Shown one piece after another: positions 34,264 through 64,000 of a stretch of 64,000 bases of DNA. Below the pieces are notes generated by a model. That model searched no databases. It was not told the origin of the DNA and worked only from the letters and a program-made list of their open reading frames with translations. The DNA is from Macrostomum lignano (taxonomy: Eukaryota). The position numbers and the translations under genes were made by a program. The stretch covers positions 32,098 through 96,097 of the forward strand of contig NIVC01003476.1 of NCBI GenBank assembly GCA_002269645.1, read 5' to 3'. Every line of letters starts with the position of its first letter. Position 1 is the stretch's first letter.

Positions 34264-35309
34264 TAGGAACCACCACTGCCCGCCGCACTGGACTAAGGCT
34301 CCCAGGAGTGCCAGCAACCAGAAGCTCTGCATCAGCCCCTCATCGGCTGATTTCCTTGGCCTGGTCGCTAACACTGCCGCTGTCACTGATTACGTCACGG
34401 CGCAGTACATCTGCAACCTGCTGATGCCGCCTAGGGTGACAGCCTCTTGGTTTCATTGCATTGTTTGTGAAAATAAGAGTCTCGTGTAAATTTTTTCTAC
34501 TAAAATAGATGACCATTTGGTCTGCTTTTAGAAGAACTGTTGCCGTCCCAAAAAATTTATTTTGTCTGGCGCCAGTGGTGCTAAAGCCCCTGGTGCTAAA
34601 GACCCTGGTGCTAAAGACCCTGGTGCTAAAGCCTTTGTTGCCAAAGCCCCTGGTGCTAAAGCCCCTGTTGCTAAAGCCCCTGTTGCTAAAGCCCCTGGTG
34701 CTAAAGACCCTGGTACTAAAGCCCCTGGAGCTAAAGACCCTGGTGCTAAAGCCCCTGGTGCTAAAGCCCCTGGTGCTAAAGCCCCTGGTGCTAAAGCCCC
34801 TGGTGCTAAAGCCGGGCTACACCTGGTCAGCTGGGTCGGCCTGTCAGTCGGGTGAGCTGTTCGGCCTGCTCCGGCCAACACCATCAGCCTACCTCCTTCT
34901 GGATCGGCCAAACGAGCAGCACTACTTTGCCTGCTCAGCGCCCATAGGCGGCACTGATGACTTCTACCCAGTGTGGCTGGAGCAGTCGCTCTTTAAAGTG
35001 CAAGGTGACCCAGCTTCCAAGTCATCAGGAAGTGAATTTAAACAATTTTTCAGTGATAATTTTAGCATCATTGTGTCCGCACTGATGCTCGCTTTGGTTG
35101 TCATGGTATCATTTGGCCTTGCCATGATTTATCGTCCTAGGATTCACAGCGGCATTCCGACTGGTGAAAGGGTTGGAGCTGAACCACATCCGCAACGGCG
35201 ACCCTCAAATGTTGACGATATGGAAGAATCAACAGAATCAGCACATCATGACGCCAATCAGAGTGTTGTTGATGCTCTAATTCCTAATCATCATACGCTG
35301 GTACAATAA
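34264..35309 (+). pseudogene. Rearranged partial tandem duplicate of the CUB-CTL gene: no CUB or signal exon, exon 2 deleted, TM exon intact; may be functional
   Basis: 34264-34435 matches the 3' end of exon 1 with a 12-nt deletion. Same donor context GTGACAGC and the same 15-bp array (about 34578-34812), fused directly to exon-3 sequence at about 34814. 34814-35168 differs from 32221-32575 at only 5 sites. Confidence 0.75.
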
Positions 35310-35574: not shown

Positions 35575-38500
35575 TGTCCCCGTCTGCAACGGAAGACGAT
35601 GGATAACGACGTACGCAAGACAGTAAAACAAACAAACTTTAAGAACTAGCTAGTAAACTTCGCAAAGTCAGTGAAGTAACGCGATCACGGTTTACTCAGT
35701 CTGAGCCTACAGCACAAGGCGATTTGGGGGATTCCTCACCCTAGTGCTTCTTCTTGTCGGAGCGATCTCTGGTGGAATCTCAGGCATATTAGTTTGTGGT
35801 TGTTGGTGAACTTCCTCTTCTTCCTCATCGGCTTCAGAGGCAGGAGCCAGCGGGCCGAATTGATTGTTTGAAGCCAGGTGTAGTTTGGCGCCCGTCAGTA
35901 GCCAGGAGGTGTTGCGCCCTTGCGTCATCAGGAACTCAGCTCGAGAGCTGGTGGTGTCGCCGTTGGCCTTAAACTGCACCGGGTCGCCATGCTGGAAGGT
36001 GGAGACCACCGGAACTCGAAGTCGCCGTCCTAGCACGAGCTCGGCAGGGGTTCGTCCGCGTGAAGTTGAAGAATTGCGATGATGTAGCAGAGCCCTCTGC
36101 AAAAAAGCGATAAAGCTGCCATGTGTTAGACGCTGGGTCCATGCCCACAAGGCCTTCTTGACAGTCTGGACGGCTCGCTCAGCTGCACCATTAGATTGAG
36201 GGGAATATGGAGGGCTCTCCGTCTTACGAGCACCGTTCTTTTCCAACCAGGCCAATAGTGGAGCCGAGGTGAACTCCGCTGCGTTGTCTGAGACAACCAG
36301 CTCCGGAACACCAAAACGAGTAAAAACTGTTCGCAATGAGGTGATGACGCTGTCTGCCGATCTGTCTTTTGTCGGGAAAGCTTCGATCCAGCCCGAGTAC
36401 GCATCAACCACGATGAGAATGTTGCCGACGGCTGGTACAAAAGCCCAGTCCATGTGCACTCTTTGAAATGGAGCGGTGGCAGGTGGCCAAGTGTCCCGAG
36501 TTTTTTTGTAGACGAGGTCTTAACTGAGTGCATGCCTGGCATTGATGAACGAATTGCTCCACAGTTCTCTGCATACCGGGCCACCAACAGGTCTGTGCAA
36601 GCAACTTGTAGGCTGCGTTGGAACCCGTGTGAGTGTCATGCACTGCGTCGAAGGCCTCTCGTCTGAGCCTTGGTGGAATGAATGCTCGGCGGCGCATGTA
36701 GATCAGGCCATTCTCTAGGGTCAGGCATTCCGCGACTTTCTTAAAGGCTGCCTCTTGCTTGTGTACAGTCTTGCCAGTCTCCAGACCGAATGCGGCGAAC
36801 TATTCGTTGAAGGAGTCTGTCTGACTCAATTTCGGATATTATTCTGTGTGGATCGATGGTAGGTGATTCAAAGGCAACGCAGTTTACCGCCTAAAAGGTA
36901 CTGCCAGGCTCAAGATCCGCGTTTTCGAACCGGAGTTGGGAGAGCGCGTCGGCATGCGGAATTTTTGTCCCTTGTAAGTATTCCAGAGTGAAGTCAAATT
37001 GCATTAGAAACAGCGCCCATCGGCTGATTCTGGAAGAGGTGCGCAATGGAATGCTGCCACCAAAGAGGCGAAGCAACGGTTGGTGGTCAGTCCGAATGGT
37101 GAACTTTCGGCCTTGCAGATAGTGTGCCAACCTATGGATTGCCCAGAAAATCGCCAGGGCCTCTCGTTCAATGTTTGAGTAGTTAGCTTCTGCGGATGAG
37201 AGTCCTGGAGATGTAAATCACGGGGTGCCCGTCCTGGATCAAAACAGCCGCAAGCGCACCTTTAGAGGCGTCAGTGGTGAGAGTGGCCTCTTTCTCGAGG
37301 CTGTAAGGCTGCACCACAGGCCTGGATGAGATTTCTCGCTTGAGCCCCTCAAATGCGTGAGTGCACTCATCGGACCAGTCGAAGGGCGAGTTTGCCTTCC
37401 GAAGGCCATTGAATGGAGCGACTTTGGCGGAAAAATTAGGTATCAGACGGCCAAAAAAATTTACTAGACCAAGGAACTGCTCAACTTCCTTCTTGGAGCT
37501 GGGAGCGGCGATATGACGGATCTTGTCAACTAAGCGGTCATCAGGCTGAATCCCAGATGCGGAGATTTTGAATCCAAGAAAGGAAATTTCATCGCAAATG
37601 TTTATGGAATTGCTTTCGTTGATGGTCACTTTCTTCTCTGCGAGCCTGGTTTTGACCGCCTTCAGCCGCCTACCTAGTGCTTCGGAATTCTCTGCAAAGA
37701 CTAGGACATCATCTTGGTAGACAAGGATACCTTTGAGGTCAGATAGAATATTCTCCATGGCCCTTTGAAAAATAAAAGAGGCATTTTTCATGCCCATTTG
37801 TAGGCGTTTGACACGGTAGAGGCCGCGTGAGGTATTGATCACTGATAGTTCCTCTGCAGATTCATCGAGAGCTATTTGCCAATAGGCAGAGCGCAAGTCT
37901 ATTTTCGCAAACTTTTTTGCGTTTTTGAGCTTGGCGAATAGGTGCTCAATCGAGGGGATTGGATAGGACTCCGACTTGATTTTCCCATTGACGTGCATTT
38001 TGTAATCGGCACACATGCGCAGCGAGCCATCTTTCTTCTTAACCCAAACAACAGGCGATGCGTTGCTTACGGGGCCATCAATGGGCTCGATGACGCCCAG
38101 CTGCTGCAGTCTCTCTAGCTCGGCATTAACTTGTGGCTCCAGCGCAAGTGGAACTGGACGAGCGCGGCAGAACTGCGGCCTGGCTGGCACCTTCAATCAG
38201 TTCCATGCTCGCTTTGATGCCCTTGATGGTCGGCAGTGGTTCATTGGCAGGCGCCGCTGTGGCAGTGGTGGCTGCGTGGAATACGGCGTCGCATTCTAGA
38301 AGATCGCGTCCTAGCAGGCTGAATGTCTTTGAAGATGAAACCACCATCAGCTCAGCTGGATGAATTCGACCGCGCATCTCGACGGTGGTAGACAGCTTTC
38401 CCAATGTCTTTAGGATGTGGTCATCATATGCCTCGAGTCGCCGATGATACTTGTCCAATTTGGGGCATTGCAGCGATTCCCAGAGGTGGCTAGAAAGCAC

Positions 38501-39477
38501 TGAAACTGAAGCTCCGGTGTCGATCTGCATCGGAATAGCGACACCGTTGATCAGCACAGTTTCTTTCGCTACCGAAACAGCATGGATGAGATCTACGTCT
38601 GTCAGATGGAGTACATCAGAGGCGTCGGAGTCCGAGGTTACAAGTTTCGTGTCCATATGGTTGACCTGTTTGACGCCACGAAGTTGCGACGCCACTGGAG
38701 CGGCACACGGATCCATAGTGGTTGCGCTTGTTGCATTTATTGCATGTCTTGCCGTAAGCCGGGCATTTGCCAGCTGGGTGAGATCTGCCACAAAACTTGC
38801 AGTCGCCTATATGCCGTTCATGGGACATGGTCACGCTACCGCCTCGATGCTGCCGAGCTCCCTTCCCTGCGAAGTTGATGGAGTGTCCTTCTTGGGTAGG
38901 CTCTGTGTCAGCGTTTCGAAGATCCCTGCTGTCTACGAACTTCGTCACTTATTCGATAGTCCTGACTATATCCACGATTTCGGTGATCTTCAAGTCTTTC
39001 GTTTGCATGGCTCCCAGAATGCGTCGTTGATCTTCTGGGTTCTGTAAGCCAGAGATGAGCATCAGACGTACCATTCCTCTTCCGGGCTGGTGCAGGTTTT
39101 TAGAGCATCGAACTCGCAGTGCGTGGCCCCCTTCCTCAAGCGAGAAAGGAACTCCGTAATGGGCTCATCGGCAGCTTGACGTAGCGTGAAGAATTTAGTT
39201 CTCTCAGCAACGACAAGGTACTTTTGAGGTTGCAGAAAGTTCACATGGCAGTCTCCAGCTCCGCAAAAGTGTGTGCTTCCACTTCTTTCGGTGCGACAAG
39301 ATGAGTATTTTTTTCGAGAGCTGCTAGCCCACAGAGCGCTATAAAGTTGTCCGTGATTTGTCGATCTGTTTCTTTATCTTCCCACTTCTTGGTTCGACCC
39401 AAGGCTTTGAATGCTTTAATCCAGGTTAATGCATGAACCGTGTCAGCAAGGTCCAGATTGCCAAGCCGCGACGCCAT

Positions 39478-41988: not shown

Positions 41989-42135
41989 TCACTTCTTTGT
42001 TGCAAATGGGGCACAGACATCTTTCACCTTTGAATGCTGCCCCGGCATTGCCTCCTCCTCTTCCCCCTCCTCCTCCTCCTCCTCCTCCTCCTCTTCCTCC
42101 TCCTCCTCCTCCTCCTCTTCCCCTCCTCCTCCTCC

Positions 42136-42197
<62 letters not shown>

Positions 42198-44235
42198 CTC
42201 CTCCTCCTCCTCCGACGGCATCGCCTCCTCCTCCTCCTCCTCCTTCGACGGCATCGCCTGCTCCTCCTCCTCCTCCTCCTTCGACGGCATCGCCTGCTCC
42301 TCCTCCTCCTCCTCCTTCGACGGCATCGCCTGCTCCTCCTCCTCCTTCTCCTCCTCCTCCTCCTCGTGTGAATTGAACCTCCGTCCAGATCGGAGCATGA
42401 CTCGAGTAACTGTCTCTCATCTGCGTCATTATATTATGCCGGCCAAAACTTAGCTCATACAGTGCTCTGTATTCCTGCCGCTGAATCAGTGCGAAGTTGT
42501 CGATTAGTTCAGTTTCGGTTGTTACACCCTCGCTGATGGCCGGCCGAAATCGTGGGAAATTGTCTTTTACACCATCATAACTGAGGTTCCAATCGCCACC
42601 AATCATGACAAAATCTGCATCTCCGCAGAGTCGATCAACTGCTCCGTTTAGAATTTTATAACAATCTTTCTTTTCTTCGTTGCTTCTGTGTGGCAGATGT
42701 ACAGAGAAGTAGGCCAAGATCATGCCATTGGCTCTCATCCTGAGCTTCGTTAACAGATAGCGGCCCTTGTCGGATGCCGTGAAACACTCATGCTGCAGCT
42801 GCCAGACTTTAGTATTAAAGGCTGTAACGATGGTATCCGGAGAATTACGATTGAGAATGTGGGAGACACATTCCCAATCGGGGCCAAGCAAGTCACAAAA
42901 TGTTTTCAGGTACTCCTGTCCGCTCCATTCAGAAATTGTGATTATGCTGAGCTGAGAGTTCTGCTTGGCTGACAGAAGTTTTTGGCAACACATTCGAACT
43001 TCTTCTTCTAGCTCTGCCGCAGCTTTCTTCGCAGTTGTCACCTGATTAGTTGTCGCCTTATCTGCCGCCTCTGCCGCCTCTGCCGTCTCTGCCGCCTCTG
43101 CCGTCTCTGCCGCCTCTGCCGCCTGACCTGCCGCCTGATCTGCCGCCTTTGCTGCCTGATCTGCCGCCTCTGCCACCTTTGCTGCCTGATCTGCCGCCTT
43201 TGCTGCCTGATCTGCCGCCTCTGCCGCCTTTGCTGCCTGATCTGCCGCCTTTGCTGCCTGATCTGCCGCATTTGCCGCCTGATTTGTTTTCATATTTGCT
43301 CTCCATACTTCTTGAATTGCCTTGCACACTGCTACCACCGCTGTCTCATTCCCTGCCACATCTGTCTCATTCCCTGCCACATCTGTCCCAGTCCCTGCCA
43401 CATCTGTCCCAGTCCCTGCCACATCTGTCCCAGTCCCTGCCACCTCTGTCCCAGTCCCTGCCACCTCTGTCCCAGTCCCTGCCACCTCTGTCCCAGTCCC
43501 TGCCACCTCTGTCCCAGTCCCTGCCACCTCTGTCCCAGTCCCTGCCACCTCTGTCCCAGTCCCTGCCACCTCTGTCCCAGTCCCTGCCACCTCTGTCCCA
43601 GTCCCTGCCACCTCTGTCCCAGTCCCTGCCACCTCTGTCCCAGTCCCTGCCACCTCTGTCCCAGTCCCTGCCACCTCTGTCCCAGTCCCTGCCACCTCTG
43701 TCCCAGTCCCTGCCACCTCTGTCCCAGTCCCTGCCACCTCTGTCCCAGTCCCTGCCACCTCTGTCCCAGTCCCTGCCACCTCTGTCCCAGTCCCTGCCAC
43801 CTCTGTCCCAGTCCCTGCCACCTCTGTCCCAGTCCCTGCCACCTCTGTCCCAGTCCCTGCCACCTCTGTCCCAGTCCCTGCCACCTCTGTCCCAGTCCCT
43901 GCCACCTCTGTCCCAGTCCCTGCCACCTCTGTCCCAGTCCCTGCCACGTCTGTCCCAGTCCTTGCCTTTGCTTCCTCGGATCGCCAATACTCTTCTGTCC
44001 GTTTCAACGCCTCTGCCACATTCTTTAACGCAATTTTCACCTCATTCCAATACCTACTCGCCTCTTCGGGTGCCTCATGTAACAACACGAGCTGCGATGC
44101 CGCTGAAAACGCTATTTTAACCAGTCCACTAGGAAGCAAGTCTCCTTTAAGCTCTGGTTTTCGTTTTGAACCATCCGCGTTGATGGACAGCGCCAAGAAA
44201 CCAGTGCAGTCAGAGTTGGCTGGCTCGGTCGCCAT
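41989..44235 (-). CDS. EEP (exonuclease-endonuclease-phosphatase, DNase I-like) fold protein, paralog A; domain split by (TGTEVAG)x28 and Ala/Gln repeats; Gly/Glu tail; 748 aa
   Basis: Ordered EEP-like motifs [39 protein letters not shown]. Intronless, with in-frame stops upstream of the ATG. Confidence 0.7.
43345..43960. repeat. Coding 21-bp minisatellite TGTCCCAGTCCCTGCCACCTC (28 units plus 2 variants)
   Basis: In frame inside paralog A, encoding TGT(E/D)VAG. Confidence 0.96.
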
Positions 44236-45850
44236 ACTTCACGGCCTTGCGGGTGATGAAAATACCGGTCACCGTCAGACAGTCCCTGGTCCCAAAGTCA
44301 CGGATCTCAGTTCCTCCAGCACTAAGGCCACCTTTTCTGGAAAAATCGTAAAAACGTATCATGAGAAAGAACTCAAACTCGTATCTAACAGTTTTTACTT
44401 GCGGTAAAAAAACACAGAACACTGTCCAATGTGAGGCATGTGCTGTGTACTGGCACACAGAACACTGTCCAATGTGAGGCATGTGCTGTGTACTGGCACA
44501 CAGAACACTGTCCAATGTGAGGCATGTGCTGTGTACTGGCACACAGAACACTGTCTAATATGAGGCATGTGCTGTGTACTGGCACACAGAACACTGTCCA
44601 ATGTGAGGCATGTGCTGTTTACTATCTGTGTACTAGACCCCTGTCCCTGATCTTCTGGCCACTGATCCCAGTCTCTGATCCCTGACCCCAGTCCCTGACC
44701 CCAGTCCCTGACCCCAGTCCCTGACCCCAGTCCCTGACCCCAGTCCCTGACCCCAGTCCCTGACCCCAGTCCCTGACCCCAGTCCCTGACCCCAGTCCCT
44801 GACCCCAGTCCCTGACCCCAGTCCCTGACCCCAGTCCCTGACCCCAGTCCCTGACCCCAGTCCCTGACCCCAGTCCCTGACCCCAGTCTCTGATCCCAGT
44901 CTCTGATCTCCGATCCCAGTCCCTGCTCCTAGTACACAGAGCACTGTCCCCAGAACACTTCCATCACCAAAGGCAGTCAAGAGGCTAGTCACTCACATGA
45001 GCTGTCAGCAATTGTCGTGGCGAATCGGCACAGCAACTGGGGGAGTCCAGGCAGCTGTCTCTGCAGCACCCAAGCCGAAAATGCATACTATATACGCAGC
45101 ATTTCGCCTCACATGAGATTCCTGTCCAATGGGAACAGCTGAATCTGGACTCACGGCTGCAGCGGCGGAGAGAGGACGGTGGGAGACGGTCAGCCCCACC
45201 CCTCCTGATACAAGGCAGCAGCCCAGCACAACAGCTGGGGTGGGGCAGGTCTCCCTAACAGCTAACTCTCGTAGTGTTTTTTTGCTGTACAAGGAACCGG
45301 GACTGCGTCTCCACTTATCTAAACTCTTTGCAGACAATGAAAAATTGTCAAAACATGTTTTAGAAGTATAATATTTAATGAGTTATTAGCTATTGAAAAT
45401 GCTCTGTAGCAGTCTGTATTCTGTGCTCTGTTGCAGTCTGTATTCTGTGGTCTGTAGCAGTCTGCATTCTGTGCTCTGTTGCAGTCTGTATTCTGTGGTC
45501 TGTAGCAGTCTGTATTCTGTATGGTCTGTAGCAGTCTGTATTCTGTGGTCTGTAGTAGTCTGTATTCTATGGTCTGTACCAGTCTGTATTCTGTGGTCTG
45601 TAGCAGTCTGTATTCTGTGGTCTGTAGCAGTCTGTATTCTGTGGTCTGTAGCAGTCTGTATTCTGTGGTCTGTAGCAGTCTGTATTCTGTGGTCTGTAGC
45701 AGTCTGTATTCTGTGGTCTGTACCAGTCTGTATTCTGTAGTCTGTAGCAGTCTGTATTCTGTGGTCTGTAGCAGTCTGTATTCTGTATGGTCTGTACCAG
45801 TCTGTATTCTGTATGGACTGTAGCAGTCTGTATTCTGTATGGTCTGTAGC
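44236..45850 (-). repeat. Upstream block duplicated at about 53966-54950; contains 43-bp, 13-bp and 24-bp arrays
   Basis: Unique stretches align almost base for base with the region upstream of paralog B; the array copy numbers differ. Confidence 0.9.
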
Positions 45851-46069
45851 ACTCTGTAATCTCTATATATATGAGTTCAACACCCTTCTCATCACCGTTG
45901 CAATCCATTACAAAAAATACAAATAAATTAATCGATGTGCCATTAATGAACCTTTTGAGGTCTCAAATCGTGTTTTCAGCTTCTAAAAGTAGCAAATTGA
46001 ATTGTCCCTTGAACAAGATCTTGCAGATATAGATTTCTGTGAATCAGATGCCATTTACCCCCAAACATT

Positions 46070-47700
46070 GGAGAGACGAGACAAGACAAGGGGAGATGAG
46101 ACAGCGAGAGATGAGACACGGTAGAGATGCGACAGGAGAGAGATGAGACAGTGAGAGATTAGAGATGAGATGATGAGACACGGGAGAGAGATGAGACTCG
46201 GGAGAGACGGTAGAGATGAGACTCGGGTGAGACGGGAGAGACGGGAGAGATGATACACGGGAGAGACGAAACACTGGAGAGATGAGACACCGGAGAGATG
46301 AGACACTGGAGAGATGAGACACGGGAGAGATGAGACACGGGAGAGATGAGACACGGGAGAGATGAGACACCGGAGAGATGAGACACGGGAGAGATGAGAC
46401 ACGGGAGAGATGAGACACTAGAGAGATGAGACACGGGAGAGATGAGACACGGGAGAGATGAGACACGGAAGAGATGAGACACCGGAGAGATGAGACACTG
46501 GAGAGATGAGACACGGGAGAGATGAGACACGGGAGAGATGAGACACGGGAGAGATGAGACACGGGAGAGATGAGACACGGGAGAGATGAGACACTAGAGA
46601 GATGATACCCTGGAGAAATAAGACACTGAAGAGATGAGACACTGGAGACATGAGACACCGAAGAGATGAGATACGGAAGAGATGAGACACTGGAGAGATG
46701 AGACACGGGAGAGATGAGACACTGGAGAGATGAGACACTGGAGAGATGAGACACCGAAGAGATGAGACACTGGAGAGATGAGACACGGAAGAGATGAGAC
46801 TCTGGAGAGATGAGACACTGGAGAGATGAGACACGGGAGAGATGAGACACGGGAGAGATGAGACTCTGGAGAGATGAGACACGGGGGATGAGACACTGGA
46901 GAGATGAGACACTGGAGAGATGAGACACTGGAGAGATGAGACACGGGAGAGATGAGACACGGGAGAGATGAGACTCTGGAGAGATGAGACACGGGGGGAT
47001 GAGACACTGGAGAGATGAGACACTGGAGAGATGAGACACTGGAGAGATGAGACACGGGAGAGATGAGACACGGGAGAGATGAGACTCTGGAGAGATGAGA
47101 CACGGGGGGATGAGACACTGGAGAGATGAGACACTGGAGAGATGAGACACCGAAGAGATGAGACACGGAAGAGATGAGACACGGAAGAGATGAGACTCTG
47201 GAGAGATGAGACACGGGGGGATGAGACACCGGAGAGATGAGACTCTGGAGAGATGAGACACCGGAGAGATGAGACACTGGAGAGATGAGACACCGAAGAG
47301 ATGAGACACGGGAGAGATGAGACACGGGAGAGATGAGACACGGGAGAGATGAGACACGGGAGAGATGAGACTCTGGAGAGATGAGACACGGGGGGATGAG
47401 ACACTGGAGAGATGAGACACCGAAGAGATAAGACACGGGAGAGATGAGACTCTGGAGAGATGAGACACGGGAGAAATGAGACACGGGAGAGATGAGACAC
47501 GGGAGAGATGAGACACGGGAGAGATGAGACACGGGAGAGATGAGACACGGGGGGATGAGACACTGGAGAGATGAGACACTGGAGAGATGAGACACTGGAG
47601 AGATGAGACACTGGAGAGATGAGACACGGGGGGATGAGACACTGGAGAGATGAGACACTGGAGAGATGAGACACTGGAGAGATGAGACAGGGTAGAGACG
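46070..47700. repeat. 15-bp purine-rich satellite GAGAGATGAGACAC(G/T)G
   Basis: More than 100 units; source of the spurious VSHLSRVSSL ORFs. Confidence 0.97.
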
Positions 47701-47822
47701 GATGAGAAAATCGGAGGAGATAGCGCCAGGAGTGAGGCCTGTCAGAAGCCCCAGCCAGAGTTTCTGAAAACTGCTTTGAATTGCTCAACAGCAAGTATTC
47801 ACGCATAACCCATTCTGCAAAT

Positions 47823-48802
47823 TCAGTAGCTTAGCATGCTGGCTCTTGTGTTGCTCCCTTTGAGCAAAGCAGAGCAAGATGGGTCGCAGCTGTGGGTGGG
47901 TGAGTCATTTGCCGCGAAATCAAAGACTGCCACGTGGCGCACAGAAATGTGAGTGAAAGCACTAAAGCGGCTCTGTGTATTTTGTGTCGTAATTGTCTGC
48001 AAGTGTTTTCTAACAGTAGGTCCACCTAGCCATTTTGCCGCCCGTACCGATGGAGAATCCCCCAGCTGAAATAATTTAGCCAAGCCACACCACCAGTGGC
48101 TATTCAAAGATACTTGGTTGCTTCAACTAGCCAAGAGTACTTTCTAGTGCGCATGATGATCGAGATTGGATAAATTTGCAACCAAGTACTTAAAATTCAT
48201 TGCAGGTCCACTAGCTCGGTCTAGTCGAAGGCCATTAGACACCTTAAGACTGTGATGATTTTTTTATTATTATTAGAGGCAGGGGGGTTGTGTGCACCCT
48301 GGCGCACTTAGGCACACAACCGGCGAGAGGCATTACTGCCCATTCCGCCGACTCCCCTGAGCAGGCACACAAGCGCGCGGATACGTACGCAGGCACACAC
48401 TCACACAGGAGTGTACAGCGGCCCTAACTTTATATTATCGTTAGGCATGTACACTTCACTGATGCTGAGCTGATGCAACTGGATTCTTGTTCCTTCGAGA
48501 GAAGACGCTTCATGTTGTATATTGATGCCATACTTGACACCATAGTTATTAAGGCGTTTCAGCTTGTTGAAGATCTGGATAAATTGATCCTTTTCAACTT
48601 GAAAGGTACCAGTACGGAATTCTTTATTCGACGGATCCCGAGCATCCACAGGTTCGCATCTGCGGAAAGTCTTCATCAGTTCTGCGATTCGGGCTTCTTT
48701 TTCATTGGAGAATTTAGGCAGGCTACCTGTGATGAAGGAAACGGTGTACTTTTGTGCAATAACGTTAATTGCGAACCCACAACTTCCAGTTTTCCAAGTC
48801 AT
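47823..48802 (-). pseudogene. Unassigned decayed coding sequence interrupted by a SINE
   Basis: Non-repetitive ORF 48401-48802 is cut by the SINE at 48426. Protein-like frame resumes below about 48260 with two stops and runs into ORF 47823-48107. No family recognised. Confidence 0.3.
48259..48426 (-). mobile_element. 5'-truncated copy of SINE family 2 with (TAA)n/A tail
   Basis: Reverse complement matches about 12980-13144; tail at 48259-48274. Confidence 0.8.
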
Positions 48803-49199
48803 TGCTCTTGAAAATTGACTCTAGCAGTTGCTCTAATATTTTGCAGTGTACTTATTCACATGGTCAGCTTCCATTCGGGTCGCCATTGTTATATAATTCG
48901 AGTTGGCGCTAAGAGGATTGTCAAAGGAGAAAATATAATTATATCTTCTTCCATATGTCATGTGAGTCATAGTTGAGTTTACAAACCAGATAAATCTGAG
49001 CTTAAAGCGGAATACCGCTGAGTGGCAACAATTTTAGGGTTGTAGAAAAAAAGCGAGCAGTATTTACTTCTGTCTTGATGCCCAGCCAGACTTTCAATCT
49101 TACTGAAAGATGAGACGACACATTTGAGTTAGGGCAGGGTAGGCGCTCTATACCTGCTGCAGCCTGCTGATATTTAAAAGCCAGTGTGAAGCGAACACC

Positions 49200-49750
49200 A
49201 TGTCGAACATTAAAGAGCCACCATGTAAAACATTAAAGAGCCACCATGTAAAACATTAAAGAGCCACATTGTTAAACATACAAGAGCCACCATGTCGAAC
49301 ATTAAAGAGCCACCATGTCTAACATTAAAGAGCCACCATGTCTAACATTAAAGAGCCACCATGTCTAACAGTAAAAAGCCACCATGTCGCCTGCTATCTG
49401 GGGGTGCTTGCTATCTGGGAGAGCCTGCTATCTGGGGGTGCTTGCTATCTGGGGGTGCTTGCTATCTGGGAGAGCCTGCTATCTGGGGGTGCTTGCTATC
49501 TGGGGGTGCTTGCTATCTGGAGGTGCTTGCTATCTGGGGGTGCCTGCTATCTGGGGGTGCCTGTTATCTGGGGGTGCTAGCTATCTGGTGGTGCTTGCTA
49601 TCTGGGGGTGCTTGCTATCTGGTGGTGCTTGCTATCTGGGGGTGCTTGCTATCTGGGGTGCTTGCTATCTGGGGGTGCCTGCTATCTGGGGGTGCTTGCT
49701 ATCTGGGGGATGCTTGCTATCTGGAGGTGATTGCTATCTGGGGGGATGCT
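49200..49750. repeat. Adjacent 23-bp (AACATTAAAGAGCCACCATGTCT) and 17-bp (GCTATCTGGGGGTGCTT) arrays
   Basis: Two abutting tandem arrays switching at about 49388. Confidence 0.92.
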
Positions 49751-50413
49751 TGCTGTCTTAGGATGTTTTCTTTTCGCATTGCACTTCATCTGAGCAGTTT
49801 TTCTATTGACTATGTGAAGGCTTTGTTTGGCCATCTTATTGATACTTGTAGAGAACAGAGATTCTATCTAGATGTCCCCCATCGGGGGGGGGGCGAAGAT
49901 TGCTAGTCCAAAACTAAACTGCATACATAAACAAATGGTCAGACTCAAAAACTCCATTTTCGGTTGGCAGCTGCATGTTTTAAAGGAGGTGCTGAATTCA
50001 TGCTGCAGCATGGTTATACTTGTAAGCTAGCCGAAACTGAAAATTACCTCTTAAGCTACAGACAGCACTGAGTCATTCTGCTTTTATTGGAAAAAAAACT
50101 TCGTCTCCTTAAGTGTGTAGTGTGATGCTCAGCTAATCGCTGACTCATGCGAACAGTTTTTTCGTGCACCCTATGCTTTAACTCATTCAGCAGCGCAGCG
50201 CTCATCTCATTGTTTGCTTAAACCAAAAAATCAATCTAAATTTGTTCTGAAATGGCGTGCCAAGATTGAAAGGAATTTGGCTCGAGTTTTAGCAACCAAT
50301 GAGAACCGAGGCTGCTTGCATTTTCACATTGTAATAATACGGGATGAATAAATCTATTGAGAGAAAGTGATTCTATTTTCAGAATTAATTGCAACAACCA
50401 AAAGCTTCAATAG

Positions 50414-50629
50414 ACTTCCATCCATAATGCCATCGTTCGCACCAGCGGAGGATCTTCCCTAGGAGATACTGTACTTAGCAAAGCAAACTATTCGAAGGTA
50501 TTGAAGCTTTTGGCATCAAATTTGTTCGCAGGTGTAGATTCTGAGAGACTAATCAATAAGCTACAAGGTTTAGATGCATTCAACTCATTTAGAAAGGAGG
50601 AAAAGCTCCTGAAGCTGCTAAAGGAAAAT
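50414..50629 (+). CDS. Putative isolated coding exon of an unrecognised gene (72 codons)
   Basis: AG at 50412-50413, GTGAGT donor at 50630. One open frame TSIHNAIVRTSGG..KLLKLLKEN; the other two frames are closed. Confidence 0.35.
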
Positions 50630-50734
50630 GTGAGTGCATGAACACGATTGCACTATCTCATATAAGTCTAACTCAAGCTATGCAAGCGATTGGCGATTTG
50701 GATGCTGAAAATGCAGGCCTTCCACCACCCTATG

Positions 50735-51860
50735 AAGGCGCTGCTGACAATCAAGGCGCTGCTGACAATCGATGTACTGCTAACAATCGAGGAACTGCTA
50801 ACAATCGATGAACTGCTAACAATCGAGGAACTGCTAACAATCGATGTACTGCTAACAATCGAGGAACTGCTGACAATCAAGGCGCTGCTAACAATCGATG
50901 TACTGCTAACAATCGATGTACTGCTAACAATCGATGTACTGCTAACAATCGATGTACTGCTAACAATCGATGTACTGCTAACAATCGAGGAACTGCTGAC
51001 AATCAAGGCGCTGCTAACAATCGATGAACTGTTAACAATCGATGAACTGCTAACAATCGATGTACTGCTAACAATCGATGTACTGCTAACAATCGAGGAA
51101 CTGCTAACAATCGAGGTACTGCTAACAATCGAGGAACTGCTAACAATCGATGTACTGCTAACAATCGATGTACTGCTAACAATCGAGGAACTGCTAACAA
51201 TCGAGGTACTGCTAACAATCGATGTACTGCTAACAATCGATGTACTGCTAACAATCGAGGTACTGCTAACAATCGATGTACTGCTAACAATCGAGGTACT
51301 GCTAACAATCGATGAACTGCTAACAATCGATGTACTGCTAACAATCGATGTACTGCTAACAATCGATGTACTGCTAACAATCGAGGTACTGCTAACAATC
51401 GATGAACTGCTAACAATCGATGTACTGCTAACAATCGATGTACTGCTAACAATCGAGGAACTGCTAACAATCGAGGTACTGCTAACAATCGAGGTACTGC
51501 TAACAATCGAGGTACTGCTAACAATCGATGTACTGCTAACAATCGAGGTACTGCTAACAATCGATGTACTGCTAACAATCGAGGTACTGCTAACAATCGA
51601 TGAACTGCTAACAATCGATGTACTGCTAACAATCGATGTACTGCTAACAATCGATGTACTGCTAACAATCGATGTACTGCTAACAATCGATGTACTGCTA
51701 ACAATCGATGTACTGCTAACAATCGATGTACTGCTAACAATCGATGTACTGCTAACAATCGAGGTACTGCTAACAATCGATGTACTGCTAACAATCGATG
51801 TACTGCTGACAATCAAGACGCTGCTGACAATCAAGACGCTGCTGACAATCAATGCGCTGC
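50735..51860. repeat. 18-bp minisatellite GCTAACAATCGA(T/G)G(T/A)ACT, about 60 units
   Basis: Four unit variants arising from two dimorphic positions. Confidence 0.97.
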
Positions 51861-52765
51861 TGCTCCGTCATCTGACTAAATCTAAAATACTGGTGCACAC
51901 TTGAACACCAACCGAATGGCTTTAATTTAAGTTAAACATTAAAAACATACCTGAAATGTAATTTCCTGTAAATGTAGCGCAAATTAGTACATGCAATCGC
52001 TGACGCAATCGCTGACGGAATAAAATCCATTTGGGATAAGCATTTCGGGTTCTTCATCGAACTCTAAATAAATAATTGTGTGTTCGAGGAGATAAATAAT
52101 CAACGACGTGCATAAATCGTTAACCAAAATGAGTAGCAAGTGCTAAACACGCGGATCTATTAATGTGTGTACGAGTGCGATCATGAGGCAAGCGCATCTT
52201 CTAATGTGTAAGATGAAAGCATTAACGTCGAGTTTTTCGAGCCTAGAATAACGAATAACTCGAATAATGAATAAATCATTAATAAGCAGAATTAATGAAA
52301 TAGCGCTCGAGAGTAAGAATTTAAAAATTTCACGAGAGTGAAAGCGATAGAGCAATTAAAGTTTACCTAAAGCGGAATAAGAGAAAAAACAAAAAGCTAC
52401 AAGCAAAACGATTAAAAAACCGAATAAACCAACGCAATCTTCATTTGACGAGAGGTACAGATACAGACCCATGCAGTTCTTATCTGGAGTGCGAATGAAC
52501 TATTAATTACGTATAAAAGTATCAGTTTGAGAACTACTTAAGTAAAATATGAAATATGCTCTAAAAAAGTTAATAGTCTTTTTTATTATGTGCCAAAAAC
52601 GGTTCGAAATTAAAACTAAATTAAAGTACACAAAGTTCTGCGAATTGTCTGTGAAAGTTAACCATTGGCAGCTTTTGCAGACTGCCAGTCGCGGACAGGT
52701 CTCTATGGAGGATAGCTCTGACGCACACTCGTTCGTGTACCAGCCGCATGATAGCTCCGCTGCTG

Positions 52766-53965
52766 CTAAGTGTTTATATTCAAATCTCTCATCAGATTTC
52801 CAATGTCAGGCCGCAGTGCCGGAAGTTGAACCTCGGCCCAGATAGGAGCATGCTGCTTTGTGTAATTGCCTTGCAGCTCTCTCATTATTTTCTTTGTATC
52901 AAAGCTTGGCGTAGTCTGTAGTCTCGAGCGTGGTGGCAAGATCAATGCGAAGTTGTCGATTGGATGTTTTACACTCGGAGCGCTTGTACTGCCATCTTCA
53001 TTGCTAAAGGCTAGAAAAATGTTTGGATGAATCTCATGTCGAAGGTCTTCAGGCCCAATTTTCCAATCGCCACCGATCATGATCAAGTCTGGAGGTTGGG
53101 TTTCGCGGCAAAGCTGATCAAGCTTTTCTTTTAAATTTCTATAAGATGCTTGCTTTTTCTCTTCATTTTTGCTTGGCAGATGTACAGAGAAGTAGGCCAA
53201 GATCATGCCATTGGCTCTCATCTTGAGCTTCGTTAACAGATAGCGGCCCTTGTCGGATGCCGTGAAACACTCATGCTGCAGCTGCCAGACTTCAGTATTA
53301 AAGGCTGTAACGATGGTATCCGGTGGATAACGATTTAGAATGTGGGAGACACATTCCCAATCGGGGCCTAGCAAGTCACAAAATGGTTTCAGGTTACCCT
53401 GTCCGCTCCATTCAGAAACTGTGATTATGCTGAGCTGAGACTTCTGCTTGGCTGACAGAAGTTTTTGGTAACACATTCGAACTTCTTTTTTTAGCTCTGC
53501 CGCAGCTTCCTTCTCAGTTGCCACCTGACCTGCCGGCTGACCTGCCGCCTCTGCCGCCTGACCTGCCTCCTGACCTGCCGCCTGACCTGCCGCCTGATCT
53601 GCCGCCTGACCTGCCGCCTGACCTGCCGCCTGATTTGCCGCCGCTGCCGCCTGACCTGCCGCCTGACCTGCCGCCTGACCTGCCGCCTGACTTGTCTCAT
53701 TCCCTGCCTGTTCTGGCTCGAACCACCAATAATTTTTTGTCCGTGTCCACGCATTTACCACATTTCTTAATGCAATTCCCACCTTCTTCCAATACCCACT
53801 CGCCTCATGTAACAACACGAGCTGCGATGCCGCTGAAAACGCTATTTTAACCAGTCCTCTAGGAAGCAAGTCTCCTTTAAGATTTCCTATTCGACTTGAA
53901 CCATCCGCGTTGATGGACAGCGCCAAGAAACCAGTGCAGTCAGAGTTGGCTGGCTCGGTCGCCAT
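52766..53965 (-). CDS. EEP-fold protein, paralog B, with a short (AAGQ)n insertion; 399 aa
   Basis: Same N-terminus [23 protein letters not shown] and central block as paralog A. Motifs FSVHLP, MIGGDWK, IDNF, QHAPI. Intronless. Confidence 0.7.
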   Translation of the reverse strand: MATEPANSDCTGFLALSINADGSSRIGNLKGDLLPRGLVKIAFSAASQLVLLHEASGYWKKVGIALRNVVNAWTRTKNYWWFEPEQAGNETSQAAGQAAGQAAGQAAAAANQAAGQAAGQAADQAAGQAAGQEAGQAAEAAGQPAGQVATEKEAAAELKKEVRMCYQKLLSAKQKSQLSIITVSEWSGQGNLKPFCDLLGPDWECVSHILNRYPPDTIVTAFNTEVWQLQHECFTASDKGRYLLTKLKMRANGMILAYFSVHLPSKNEEKKQASYRNLKEKLDQLCRETQPPDLIMIGGDWKIGPEDLRHEIHPNIFLAFSNEDGSTSAPSVKHPIDNFALILPPRSRLQTTPSFDTKKIMRELQGNYTKQHAPIWAEVQLPALRPDIGNLMRDLNINT

Positions 53966-55211
53966 ACTTCACGGCCTTGCGGGTGATGAAAATACCGGTC
54001 ACCGTCAGACAGTCCCTGGTCCCAAAGTCACGGATCTCAGTTCCTCCAGCACTAAGGCCACCTTTTTTGGAAAAATCGTAAAATGTATCATGAGAAAGAA
54101 TTCAAACTCGTATCTAACAGTTTTTACTTGCGGTAAAAAACACAGAACACTGTCCAATATGAGACATGTGCTGTTTACTATCTGTGTACTAGACCCCTGT
54201 CCCTGATCTTCTGGCACTGATCCCAGTCTCTGATCCCTGACCCCAGTCCCTGACCCCAGTCTCTGATCCCAGTCTCTGATCTCTGATCCCAGTCCCTGCT
54301 CCTAGTACACAGAGCACTGTCCCCAGACACTTCCATCACCAAAGGCAGTCAGGAGGCCAGTCACTCACATGAGCTGTCAGCAATTGTCGTGGCGAATCGG
54401 CGCAGCAACTGGGGGAGTCCAGGCAGCTGTCTCTGCAGCACCCAAACCAAAAATGCATACTATATACGTAGCATTTCGCCTCACATGAGATTCCTGTCCA
54501 ATGGGAACAGCTGAATCTGGACTCTGAGAGGACGGTGGGAGACGGTCAGCCCCACCCCTCCTGATACAAGGCAGCAGCCCGACACAACAGCTGGGGTGGG
54601 GCAGGTCTCCCTAACCGCAAACTCTCGTTGTGTTTTTTTTGCTGTACAAGGAACCGGGGCTGCGTCGCCACTTATCTAAACTCTTTGCAGTCAATGAAAA
54701 ATTGTCAAAACATGTTTTTAAAGTACAATACTCAATCAGTTATTAGCTATTAAAAATGCTCTGTAGCAGTCTGTATTCTGTTGTCTGTACCAGTCTGTAT
54801 TCTATGGTCTGTACCAGTCTGTGTTCTGTGGTCTGTAGCAGTCTGTATTCTGTGGTCTGTAGTAGTCTGTAGTCTGTGGTCTGTATTAGTCTGTATTCTG
54901 TATGGTCTGCACCAGTCTGTATTCTGTATGGTCTGCACCAGTCTGTATTAGTAGTGATAGAAAATTTCGGTCATACCCCATTTGTCAATTACAAAATACG
55001 TAATAAGGTACCCGTCAGAAATTTTACTACGCACATACCTTATTTTTCTATTAAAAATTAAACAGTAAGGTACCGAACCAAAAGGTAGGGTATTCTACAG
55101 GAATTCCAACTACACTGCACCGTACCCACAAAGAATTCAACAGAAGAAAAGATCTCAAGCTCGATCAACCAACCAACTTGTCCAAAAACGCATTTTTGGC
55201 ATATTTCTGCA

Positions 55212-56501
55212 TTACAAGAATAGAGGTAACACTTGTGTTGCAAAGCGTCGTAGGCAAAAATACGCGCGCCGAAACTCATTTCCTCGTCAAGGCCCACTAC
55301 CAAGGAGACGCGTTAAAAAGAATCGAAGACTACCACCACGAGTCAGTTTGAAATACAAATAAAACAACACCCAAATATCACAATAACCAGTCCGAGGATC
55401 CTGAATAGCAAATCGACTGTAGGATCAATTTCGAAAATCCCCACATTCTCGCCCCAACTACCGTCTAACATTTTCCGGTGGACTTAAACAAAGCGAATCA
55501 AAATATTCCCCGACTCTTCGTCCTCGGCGCCCCCGAACCCGCCAGCTACTCACCCAAACCGCAACCCAATGCCTACCAGGAAGATTCGAAGTGTCTGTAT
55601 TCGCCACAAAGAAATAGTCTTTACCATCTAAGGGTAATTGTCCAAGAATTTGAAGATCTCGGCGGCGCACCCGCGGCGGAGCGCGCATGCATTCGCACTG
55701 AAAGCAAATAGCGCTCTCATCCACCCGGAATTTGGCCACACTCACAATGGACTCCAAGCGGCGGCAGTCCACGGACACGGCCCTGGTCACGGTTTCAAGT
55801 AGCTGCGGCATTTGAACCCCGGCCCGCTGTCCATCCAGGCGCATGCGCTGGATCTGCGCGCGAAGCGCAGCAACTGAGGGGTTTTGACACCACTCATCCC
55901 GTATGTAGCGCGCCAACGTGCTGAAAATTGCCCGGCGGGACGAGCAGGGCGCTGCTTCACTCGGGGCCGGCCCATGAGGCTTGGTTGATTCGGCCATGGT
56001 AAAAAGTGTAGGTCTAATCTCACTATCTTCGGGCAACTCTGACACTGAGCCTACCATCTGCTCGATTATAAGTCAGTGTGGACTCAATGTGGACCCGCGG
56101 GCGTTTTGGGTGGTGGCCCCTCGCCGCCCTCCTGCGCCCCAAGAAACCGAAGCCTGCAGCAACGACCGGCTGGCCCCGGCTGAAGGTCCGCCCCCGGCCA
56201 AGGCACTGGTGAGCTCTACCGGGTCATCTATCTCAAAGTCAACTGGCGTTGCTTGGGCGGCTTCTGGACTCGACGGAGGGAGGGCGACGGCCAGCGCTAC
56301 GTGTGTGTGTATGGGGCGAGGTAAGACCAATTGTGTGTCCAGCAGGTCATCTATCTTTACGTCAATTGGCGCCGCTTGGGCGGCTTCTGGACTCGAGGGA
56401 GGGAGGGCGACGGTCAGCGCTGTGTGTGGGCGAGGCAAGACCAATTGTGTGTCCAGCACAGCAGGTGTTGGCAGCTGCTGAAACTTCGCCACACAGCACA
56501 A
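55212..56501 (-). pseudogene. Decayed ORF ending in an adenain-type (clan CE, Polinton/adenovirus-like) cysteine protease domain
   Basis: One reading frame with in-frame stops at 56073, 55458, 55425 and 55287. Motifs VANTD..PGRHWVAV, GEYFDS..SPP, AIQDPRTGYCDIWVLFYL..GGSL..FL. Putative His 55569-55571, Asp 55497-55499, Gln 55401-55403 and Cys 55380-55382 are all in frame. Confidence 0.7.
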
Positions 56502-61120: not shown

Positions 61121-64000
61121 GTTAACTATGTGGACACGAAATCTGTAACCCCAGACTCTGACGCCTCGGATGTACTCCATCTGACAGACGTAGATCTCAT
61201 CCACGCTGTATCAGTAGCGACAGAAACTGTGCTGATCAACGGTGTCGCCATTCCGATGCAGGTCGACACCGGAGCTTCAGTTTCAGTGCTCTCTAGCTAC
61301 CTCTGGGAATCGCTGCAACGCCCCAAATTGGACAAGTATCACCGGCGACTCGAAGCATATGATGGCCACACCCTAAAGACATTGGGAAAGCTGTTTACCA
61401 CCGTGGAGATGCGCGGTCGAATTCACCCAGTTGAGCTGATGGTGGTTTCATCCTCAAAGAACTTCGGCCTGCTAGGACGCGATCTTCTAGATTGCGACGC
61501 CGTATTCCACGCAGCCACCACTGCCACAGCTGTGCCTGCCAATGAACCACTGCCGACCATCAAGGGCATCAAAGCGAGCATGGAGTTGATTGAAGGCGCC
61601 AGCCAGGCCGCAGTTCTGCCGCGCTCGCCCAGTTCCGCTTGCACTGGAACTGCAAGTCAATGCCGAGCTCGAGAGACTGCAGCAGCTGGGTGTCATCGAG
61701 CCCATTCAGGGCCCGGTAAGCAACGCCTCGCCTGTTGTTTGGGTTAAAAAGAAAGATGGCTCACTTCGAATGTGTGCCGATTACAAAGTGCTCGTCAGTG
61801 GGAAAATAAATTCAGACGCTCTGCTTATTCGCAAATAGCTCTCGATGAGTCTGCGGAGGAACTATCAGTGATCAACACCTCAAGCGGCCTCTACAAATGG
61901 GCATGAAAAACGCCTCCTTCATTTTTCAAAGAGCCATGGAAAGCATTCTATCTGACCTCAAAGGCATCCTTATCTACCAAGATGATGTCCTAGTCTTTGC
62001 AGGGAATTCTGAAGCACTCGGGAAGCGGCTGAATGCGGTCAAAACCAGGCTCGCAGAGAAGAAATTGACCATCAACGAAAGCAATTCATAAACATTTGCG
62101 ATGAAATTTCCTTTCTTGGATTCAAAATCTCCGCATCTGGGATTCAGCCTGATGACCGCTTAGTTGACAAGATCCTTTATATAGCCGCTCCCAGCTCCAA
62201 GAAGGAAGTTGAGCAGTTCCTTGGCCTAGTAATTTTTTTGGCCGTCTGATACCTAATTTCTCCGCTAAAGCCGCTCCGCCGAACAGCCTTCGGAAGGGAA
62301 ACTCATCCTTCGACTGGTCCGATGAGTGCACTCACGCATTTGAGGCGCTCAAGCGGCCTCTACAAATGGGCCGCTGGTGCAGCCTTACAGCCTCGAGAAA
62401 GAGGCCACTCTCACCACTGACGCCTCCAAAGGTGCGCTTGCTGCTGTTTTGACCCAGGACGGGCACCCCGTGATTTACATCTCCAGGACTCTCATCCGCA
62501 GAAGCTAACTACTCAAACATCGAGCGAGAAGCCCTGGCGATTTTCTGGGCAATCCATAGGCTTAAACACTATCTGCAAGGCCGGAAATTCACCATTCGGA
62601 CTGATCACCAATCTTTGCTTCGTCTCTTTGGTGGCAGCATCCCATTGAACAGCCGATGGCGCTGTTTCTAATGCAATTTGACTTCACTCTGGAATACTTA
62701 CAAGGGACGAAAATTCCTCATGCCGACGCGCTTTCCCGACTCCGGTTCGAAAACGCGGATCTTGAGCCTAGCAGTACCTTTTGGGCGGTAAACTGCGTTG
62801 TCTTTCAATCCCCAACCATCGATCCACAAAGAATAGTATCCGAAATGAGTCCGACAGACTTCTCGAACGAATAGTTCGCCGCATTTGGTCTGGAGACTGG
62901 CAAGACTGCACACAAGCAGAGGCAGCCTTTAAGAAAGTCGCGGAATGCCTGACCCTAGAGAATGGCCTGATCTACATGCGCCGCCGAGCATTCATTCCAC
63001 CAAGGCTCAGACGAGAGGCCTTCGACACAGTGCATGACACTCATACGGGTTCCAACGCAGCGCACAAGCTGCTTGCACAGACCTGTTGGTGGCCCGGTAT
63101 GCAGAGGCACGTGGAGCAATTCGTTTATCAATGCCAGGCATGCACTCATTTGAGACCTCGTTTGCAAAAAACTCGGGACACTTGGCCACCTGCCACCGCT
63201 CCGTTTCAAAGAGTTGCACATGACTGGGCTTTTGTACCGGCCGTTGGCAACATCCTCATCGTGGTTGACGCTTACTCGGGCTGGATCGAAGCTTTCCCGA
63301 CAAAAGACAGATCGGCAGACAGCGTCATCACCTCATTGCGAACAGTTTTTACTCGTTTTGGTGTTCCGGAGCTGGTTGTCTCAGACAACGCAGCGGAGTT
63401 CACCTCGGCTCCACTATTGGCCTGGTTGGAAAAGAACGATGCTCGTAAGACGGAGAGCCCTCCATATTCCCCTCAATCTAATGGTGCAGCCGAGCGAGCC
63501 GTCCAGACTATCAAGAAGGCCTTGTGGGCATGGACCCAGCGTCTAACACATGGCAGCTTTATCGCTTTTTTGCAGAAGGCTCTTCTACACCATCGTAATT
63601 CTTCGAAATCACGCAAACGAACACCTGCCGAGCTCGTTCTAGGTCGACGACTTCGAGTTCCGGTGGTCTCCACCTTCCAGCAGGGTGACCCGGTGCAGTA
63701 CAAGACCCACGGCGACACCACAAGCTCTCGAGCAGAGTTTCCTGATGTCGCAGGGGCGCAACACTTCCTGGCTACTGACGGGCGCTAAACTACAACTGGC
63801 CTCAAACAATCAATTCGGCCCGCTAGTTACTGCCTCTGAAGCTGATGAGGAAGAAGAGGAGGTTCACCAACAGCCACAAGCTGACGCGTCTGAGGCTCCC
63901 CCTGAGACCGCCCCGACAAGAAGAAGCACAAGGGTAAAGAATCTCCTGAATCGCTTTGTGCCGTAGGCTCGGACTGATCAAGCCATAATCGAGCTATGTC
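61121..64000 (+). mobile_element. Second, 5'-truncated and internally deleted copy of the same Ty3/Gypsy family (PR-RT-RH-IN); runs off the window
   Basis: VDTGAS, YQDD, HDTHTG..CQAC, VDAYS/SDNA/GAAER. Co-linear with 35707-38660. No gag or 5' LTR at the left junction. Confidence 0.95.

Follow-up and report, generated by a model that had tools for sequence, protein, structure and literature searches.

We analyzed a 64,000-nucleotide stretch of the Macrostomum lignano genome (contig NIVC01003476.1, positions 32,098 to 96,097 of the forward strand), hereafter called the window, which contains two neighboring genes on the minus strand, designated paralog A and paralog B. Each is an intronless open reading frame (ORF) whose product is predicted to adopt the fold of the endonuclease/exonuclease/phosphatase (EEP) proteins, which are Mg2+-dependent phosphoesterases, and in each product a long, repeat-bearing insert separates the first strand of the fold from the second. 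We consider it probable that A and B are genuine tandem intronless paralogs of a small, taxonomically narrow EEP subfamily, and that the insert arose from in-frame minisatellites. A preliminary description of this DNA had reported both ORFs, their repeats and motif variants, and their intronless state, and all of these were recovered: the ORFs lie on the minus strand at the coordinates given below, the repeats and motif variants were all seen by TRF and from motif positions, and the two paralogs align over their length with no credible frame-keeping splice sites. In window coordinates, the features are as follows.

41989-44235, minus strand: paralog A, an intronless ORF of 748 amino acids (aa) with a predicted EEP fold, a 406-aa linker between strands beta1 and beta2, and a repeat tail
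44170-44202, minus strand: strand beta1 of A and the N-x-D-G-x-x-R motif (aa 12-22; N19 and D21, then R25), invariant in the family alignment
43963-44169, minus strand: N-side unique-sequence base of the A insert (aa 23-91, including LLHEA), predicted helical and fast-evolving
43335-43966, minus strand: 21-nt coding minisatellite of A (30.1 copies, 98% matches by TRF), which carries the 11-mer CAGGGACTGGG
43054-43280, minus strand: 9-, 21-, and 51-nt coding arrays of A, encoding heptad-like Ala-rich runs (AADQAAK)
42361-43050, minus strand: C-side half of helix alpha1 of A, beta2 (SIITISEW, E436), and the rest of the predicted EEP core (H513, D548, N550, D579, H613)
42051-42365, minus strand: trinucleotide repeat of A (105 copies), encoding a Gly-rich, RGG-like, and poly-Glu C-terminal tail
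44236-45866, minus strand: upstream region of A, duplicated upstream of B (53966-54955), with 43-nt, 13-nt, and 24-nt noncoding minisatellites
52766-53965, minus strand: paralog B, an intronless ORF of 399 aa with a 155-aa linker between beta1 and beta2
53519-53691, minus strand: 12-nt coding minisatellite of B (AAGQ; 14.9 copies by TRF)
52826-53464, minus strand: beta2 of B (SIITVSEW, E185) and the predicted EEP core (H262, D300, D337, H372; predicted local distance difference test score, pLDDT, 65-91)
53060-53062, minus strand: Lys302 of B (codon AAA) at the otherwise invariant Asn of GDxN, which is Asn in A and in 4/4 relatives
43387-43943, 44687-44925, and 54242-54298, all minus strand: sites of CAGGGACTGGG

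A and B aligned from Met1 to the last catalytic His and were 63% identical overall. The SINADG and LLHEA motifs occupied the same positions in both (aa 17 and aa 51, respectively), and the segment KLLSAK...LSIIT(I/V)SEW started at aa 419 in A and at aa 168 in B. GGDWN in A (N550, codon AAC) corresponded to GGDWK in B (K302, codon AAA), and YSSH in A (H613) to TKQH in B (H372). The TGTEVAG array of A consisted of 24 TGTEVAG and 4 TGTDVAG units (28 in total), plus NETDVAG variants. The trinucleotide-encoded tail of A was absent from B, as well as from the relatives described below. A third copy of the gene was not found in the 64-kb window by tblastn, and non-coding RNAs were not found there by Rfam and tRNA scans.

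Relatives were sought by an exhaustive phmmer search of 1.84 billion protein representatives, with the repeat-free C-terminal 250 aa of B as the query, and four genuine ones were found (P0004, P0006, P0007, and P0008). The best, P0004, is the M. lignano protein PAA65713.1 (BOX15_Mlig011052g1; 293 aa, E 2.1e-17, 43% identity), which carries the UniRef name 'Endonuclease/exonuclease/phosphatase domain-containing protein' and also matched ORF A (tblastn, E 3.8e-32); the other three are unnamed Logan proteins of 269-317 aa (E 4e-7 to 9e-4). The match between the C-terminal domain of B and PAA65713.1 indicated that the resemblance of the ORFs to EEP proteins was not due to chance. P0003 and P0005, the strongest and the third phmmer matches, were rejected as tandem-repeat artifacts, and the family hidden Markov model did not match them. 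Word-indexed homolog searches returned only low-complexity matches for full-length B and none for its C-terminal domain, and a word-indexed search with the family profile recovered P0007 only. Furthermore, the family alignment contained no conserved stretch usable for searching metagenomes or genomes and revealed no viral relative, a degenerate motif scan of metagenomes yielded 10 chance loci of which none was homologous, and NCBIfam gave no usable match to single domains.

The four relatives resembled A and B in the N-terminus, in the invariant residues, in having S/T-H in place of the canonical S-D-H, and in being encoded by single-ORF genes; that of P0004 is a single ORF of 882 nt within a 258-kb contig, and the P0008 gene, too, consists of one ORF in genomic contigs. 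A and B also agreed with P0004 in the start codon and the N-terminus. However, the relatives have only a short link between beta1 and beta2 and no repeats within the protein, whereas A has a repeat tail in addition to its insert. Like A and B, the P0004 gene lies amid very large minisatellites: it is flanked by a 21-nt array of 80 copies and a 45-nt array of 123 copies, and tandem repeat makes up 41% of its 20.9-kb locus. On NIVC01001626.1 (1-8480), a 1.7-kb 21-nt array and a 5.6-kb 45-nt array precede the gene. The window and this locus shared only one nucleotide match, of 131 nt at 79%. The neighbors of the relatives were unrelated, for example, zf-TRAF and THUMP genes. The P0007 gene (Logan SRR9661224, 125-2914) is the third in a same-strand row of ORFs (zf-TRAF, THUMP, and EEP) spaced by 45-60 nt, an arrangement that could reflect either polycistronic pre-mRNA or strong compaction of the genome. 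In addition, an N-terminal Cys cluster (CxCCG...CSC...SHxC) is present in P0006 and P0007 but absent from the window genes.

The structure was modeled with AF2 on a six-sequence alignment (A, B, and the four relatives); an alignment of A and B only gave a pLDDT of 36. In B numbering, beta1 and aa 178-380 formed one domain, with a pLDDT of about 80 for residues 11-20 and 65-91 for residues 178-380, and the counterparts in B of the beta1 residues of A were modeled as a strand (aa 12-19, pLDDT ~80). Foldseek against the PDB returned 195 matches at E<=1e-3, and the top 50 were all EEP proteins with a probability of 1.00. The top matches were nocturnin (2e-10), many TDP2 structures, ANGEL2, EEPD1, and bacterial EEP proteins, with TM scores of 0.46-0.64 (target-normalized). 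Similarly, all named matches in the Foldseek viral library were EEP-fold proteins. The preliminary description had assigned the ORFs to the EEP/DNase-I fold, and the confident AF2 core with its exclusively EEP Foldseek matches upheld this. Based on structure prediction and motif order, we consider the predicted EEP/DNase-I fold of the A and B core, a four-layer alpha/beta sandwich, to be sound. TDP2, nocturnin/CCR4-type proteins, ANGEL2, and ExoIII/APE1 resemble the window proteins in the fold (Foldseek E 2e-10 to 1e-8), in N-x-D-G on beta1, in the His on the 'HL' strand, and in GD(F/W/L)N, which A retains. However, TDP2, nocturnin, and ANGEL2 showed 10-14% identity to A and B in structural alignments, with no sequence-level match. 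Unlike TDP2 and CCR4/nocturnin, A and B also have no UBA or leucine-zipper accessory domain and no Asp before the final His, and they carry the large alpha1 insert.

In the relatives, a single short helix lies between the Asn-bearing strand beta1 (a-I-N-t-D-g-t-n-R) and the Glu-bearing strand beta2 (v-T-V-t-E-w), and the gap between the two strands was 26-30 residues, compared with 155 in B and 406 in A. The helix of P0004, 'GLEQLVKDVQEETEQQ', aligned in part with the N-side ('GLVKI...') and in part with the C-side of A and B. This two-sided alignment, together with the short gap in the relatives, indicated that the insert interrupts helix alpha1 within the beta1-alpha1-beta2 crossover. In both paralogs, the middle of the insert consists of in-frame minisatellite arrays, which are bordered on either side by a base of unique sequence, and helices were predicted on both flanks of the arrays. 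All 4 arrays inside the ORFs had periods divisible by three, compared with 18 of the 39 arrays outside them. The insert would form a largely helical or disordered appendage that protrudes from the surface and starts near the substrate-binding face.

Thus, the earlier report that a repeat-bearing insert of very different length interrupts the fold was confirmed by the gaps of 406 and 155 residues. Other points of that description required revision. LLHEA had been taken as an EEP strand preceding the insert; in the model of B, however, it lies within a predicted helix (aa 50-54) inside the insert, and only beta1 (SINADG) precedes it, with beta2 following at aa 178-187. A duplication of the Glu strand had also been proposed, but local alignment of the segments before and after the insert was no better than that of shuffled sequences (526 and 945 of 2000 shuffles reached the score). 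The insert-free relatives and the model instead identified SIIT(I/V)SEW as the single genuine Glu strand. Lastly, the statement that the EEP fold normally takes only short loops was contradicted by human nSMase2 (SMPD3), whose catalytic domain has a 165-residue insertion (residues 175-339) between Asn130 and Glu364 (PMC9697135).

The nSMase2 insertion lies between the beta1 Asn and the beta2 Glu, that is, at the same topological site as in A and B, and this parallel is architectural only. No significant sequence relationship was detected (SMPD2, E 0.16), and the nSMase2 insert is not a tandem repeat. In addition, nSMase2 has an N-terminal membrane domain and the canonical D-H pair, whereas the window proteins lack that Asp, and neither a signal peptide nor a hydrophobic segment was seen in either ORF, where beta1 already begins at residue 12. 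Low-complexity or repeat inserts inside globular domains are found in repeat-prone genomes, such as that of Plasmodium falciparum, where they are tolerated in surface connections of conserved enzymes. The inserts of A and B differ from this type in that they consist of 12-51-nt minisatellites, not homopolymer or codon repeats, and in that two adjacent paralogs carry different arrays. The pair therefore represents a known architecture in unusual form, within an uncharacterized EEP subfamily, and not a new kind of system. What sets the variant apart, and is notable, is that the insert is made of hypervariable minisatellites and differs by 250 residues between neighboring paralogs.

The residues invariant in the family (B numbering) were N19, D21, R25, T182, E185, S260-V-H262-L-P, G299, D300, D337, N338 (the last two within (I/K)DNF), H372, and P374, and the AF2 model placed them at the ends of strands, following the canonical order of EEP proteins. 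Asn on beta1 and Glu on beta2 (N19/E436 in A and N19/E185 in B), which are metal and phosphate ligands in the superfamily, were invariant in 6/6 members, as were, across the family, the terminal His (H613 in A, H372 in B) and its partner Asp (D579 in A, D337 in B). A retained every family-invariant catalytic residue plus the Asn of GDWN; of the GDxN motif, D548 and N550 of A were kept in 4/4 relatives, whereas B has D300 but Lys302. The residue before the terminal His was Ser in A, P0004, P0007, and P0008, Thr in P0006, and Gln in B, which has one extra residue preceding this His. The Asp of the canonical S-D-H was missing from the whole family, A included. The SSH of A had been noted earlier as a departure from SDH; the motif is indeed present, but S/T-H occurs in all relatives, so it is a trait of the family and not a peculiarity of A. 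By contrast, the non-canonical character attributed to B held, as two of its catalytic positions are altered (GDWK and KQH). The Asn of GDxN is essential in APE1, ExoIII, TDP2, and DNase I. Given this essentiality, the residues present suggest that A is probably an active phosphodiesterase, and that catalysis by B, in which Lys replaces the catalytic Asn, is probably impaired or altered. By analogy with the TDP2/nocturnin/ExoIII-like motifs, the substrate of A would most likely be nucleic acid.

Tandem repeat constituted 32% of the window, with one array per ~1.5 kb. In the M. lignano genome, long terminal repeat (LTR) elements account for 21% and simple or tandem repeats for 15% (PMC5730564). 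The 11-mer CAGGGACTGGG occurred 45 times in the window, compared with 0.03 expected, and was confined to the coding 21-nt array of A and to the noncoding 13-nt arrays upstream of A (450-700 nt) and B. The unit may also resemble the G-rich core of Jeffreys minisatellites. In place of the array, the corresponding coding site of B contains one 'AGNET' proto-unit, two bases different from the unit of A, indicating that the A array grew from a pre-existing stretch of codons; this array now has a core in common with the minisatellite upstream of its own gene. Such sequence features point to a putative local, recombination-driven process rather than to an imported domain. The arrays would stem from the very high minisatellite load of the genome, and their survival would be due to periods that are multiples of three and to the permissiveness of the crossover, which also holds the insertion of nSMase2.

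The history of the pair was mosaic. By blastn, the A/B duplication comprised the 5' two-thirds of the ORF and ~1.6 kb upstream, shared noncoding minisatellites included, and the homogenized tract ended exactly after the SVHLP codons (42691 in A and 53174 in B). Within aa 1-265, synonymous divergence (dS) was 0.05, and the unique upstream noncoding DNA was 96-97% identical. In contrast, the 3' third beyond SVHLP showed saturation at synonymous sites (dS ~1.1), with a ratio of nonsynonymous to synonymous divergence (dN/dS) of 0.41. In this third, A was closer to P0004 (46%) than to B (37%), and A and B were equidistant from the three outgroups. The dS contrast and the 3' distances indicated that A and B are old paralogs whose 5' parts, the insert included, were recently homogenized. 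The 5' two-thirds and the upstream region would have been homogenized most simply by gene conversion, and the arrays would then have expanded or contracted independently in A and B. All A/B indels in the aa 1-265 part were multiples of 3, whereas the flanking noncoding DNA had 1-nt and 16-nt indels.

Several observations weigh against reading A and B as functional EEP paralogs. At the sequence level, profile matches were weak: 9/12 of the PDB profile matches were EEP proteins, but at E values of 0.084 for the CdtB family, 0.16 for SMPD2 (52 profile positions), and 0.33 for ExoIII, and family-level NCBIfam matches were marginal and below cut-offs (E 0.0014-0.04; CdtB family 0.0014 in 2/6 members, ExoIII 0.011). 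The CdtB/DNase I type was thus the top marginal match in both profile searches. By hhalign, the GDxN region aligned with the GDMN of Escherichia coli ExoIII (P 3e-5), a local alignment that serves only as supporting evidence. The insert region (aa 24-176 of the model) had a mean pLDDT below 50, such that the model does not define its shape. In a family without the Asp of S-D-H, the chemistry of A may be atypical. Furthermore, neither the exact A protein nor the exact B protein was present in a 15-billion-sequence collection. Lastly, dN/dS was ~2 in aa 1-265, which suggests a recent history without purifying selection, in which one copy could be decaying.

Alternatively, the insert could be an adaptive, length-variable, and diversifying stalk, a helical hairpin with a repeat tip, that tunes substrate access, oligomerization, or partner recognition; such a stalk would fit a conflict-driven role, for example, in defense or reproduction. 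We regard this as unlikely. Both paralogs keep the same unique base on either side of different arrays, helices are predicted beside these arrays, and Ala residues show a/d-like spacing in the AADQAAK heptad. However, the four relatives have no insert at all, arrays recur every ~1.5 kb in the window whether coding or not, and the insert is modeled with low confidence. The divergence of the insert base (aa 24-85) can be read in two ways. It showed 27 nonsynonymous and 3 synonymous A/B differences (dN 0.15 and dS 0.05, compared with 0.039 for noncoding DNA), and its nucleotide divergence was 12%, compared with 3.9% in the noncoding DNA upstream (Fisher p 1e-5). Amino acids of the insert base changed ~3 times faster than nucleotides of the flanking noncoding DNA, and with the latter as a neutral proxy the excess of nonsynonymous changes gave a Poisson p of 5e-8, whereas the contrast of synonymous and nonsynonymous changes taken alone was not significant (binomial p 0.13), and mutation is plausibly raised beside minisatellites. 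Thus, the fast base may reflect either diversifying selection or a local mutational effect next to the arrays. A more far-reaching version, to which we give little credence, is that a selected, length-variable, and rapidly diversifying coiled-coil or disordered stalk controls reach or binding, with A as the active enzyme, B as a dead partner or decoy, and the intronless and patchily distributed family engaged in genetic conflict. If true, the stalk family would act in defense against mobile DNA or in reproductive competition. The preliminary description had likewise suggested a tunable stalk; a repeat-saturated genome offers a simpler origin for the insert.

One or both ORFs might instead be non-functional relics, held open by the repeats and by recent duplication or conversion, and B would be the likelier relic. 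The dN/dS of ~2 noted above is compatible with this, as are the Lys at the invariant Asn of B and the Gln plus extra residue before its catalytic His, and repeat-derived ORFs of 200-530 aa stand open in several frames across the region; the A and B proteins are also missing from public protein sets. However, ~300 non-repeat codons are open in each copy, and the indels in aa 1-265 are all in frame, in contrast to the 1-nt indels in the flanks. The old 3' third (dS ~1.1) retains a dN/dS of 0.41 with D, D, and H kept in both, and the start codon and N-terminus agree with the M. lignano protein. We therefore hold this explanation to be improbable.

It is very doubtful that the insert is an unrecognized open-frame intron, the removal of which would leave a mature protein with a normal short alpha1. 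Although the relatives have only 26-30 residues at this site, the insert region shows no purifying selection, and M. lignano genes contain about five introns on average (PMC5730564), A has zero frame-keeping GT...AG candidates resembling the consensus, and B has one weak donor with purine-rich candidate acceptors. In addition, 64-92 non-repeat codons of this region are free of stops in both paralogs, array periods and indels are all multiples of three, and the genes of the relatives are single ORFs in genomic DNA.

The preliminary description had considered a retrotransposon origin, and LINE endonucleases do have the EEP fold, but the idea that the ORFs derive from decayed non-LTR retrotransposon ORF2s, of which they would be the 5' endonuclease ends, is hardly tenable: the reverse transcriptase (RT) ORF located 3.8 kb downstream of A on the same strand is of the Ty3/gypsy type (4ol8, E 2e-44), with a protease ORF before it and an integrase after it, no RT lies downstream of B, both ORFs terminate 27-135 aa past the last catalytic His, the relatives are stand-alone proteins of 269-317 aa with unrelated neighbors, and TDP2 and nocturnin, rather than LINE endonucleases, are the best matches to the fold. 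Decayed ORF2 remnants with RT, the outcome that the description itself had named as refuting, were looked for; no RT in frame, nor one nearby in LINE order, was found, and a LINE origin is effectively refuted. Two copies of a Ty3/gypsy-type LTR retrotransposon pol region (protease, RT, and integrase), inverted relative to each other and located at 35707-38791 on the minus strand and 61130-63788 on the plus strand, bracket both EEP genes.

Other ORFs of the window were also observed, and exact look-ups of eight of them returned no match. Those at 31619-32755 and 34509-35309 (both plus strand) have in common a C-terminal part of ~130 aa that looks identical in the two and includes a transmembrane stretch; different minisatellite-encoded repeats precede it, and the two form a second repeat-variable tandem pair in the window. 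The ORF at 29978-31120 (plus strand) runs into a 15-nt 'RPWCW' array. At 14545-16248 (plus strand), a 567-aa ORF, by its look an ACBD5-like acyl-CoA-binding-domain protein with a C-terminal membrane anchor, holds poly-Gln, poly-Asp, and poly-Ser runs and is thus further repeat-laden coding sequence. Approximately 1.5 kb upstream of B, a 199-aa ORF (55458-56057, minus strand) contains the motif 'GRHWVAVW', which is suggestive of cysteine proteases of the Ulp1/adenain type; in the PDB, this ORF matched only the African swine fever virus S273R protease, and weakly (E 0.64).

Reading A and B as tandem paralogs with a minisatellite-derived insert, we note that the analysis flags a very small, uncharacterized EEP subfamily, represented by four clusters among the 1.84 billion representatives searched. 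After nSMase2, the pair is a clear second case of an EEP fold that accommodates hundreds of additional residues in its beta1-alpha1-beta2 crossover. What caused the insert is visible in the pair itself, namely in-frame minisatellites in a minisatellite-saturated genome. The old 3' catalytic third and the recently homogenized 5' part give the genes their mosaic history, and the two copies provide a natural test of both insert length and the Asn-to-Lys change in the active site.

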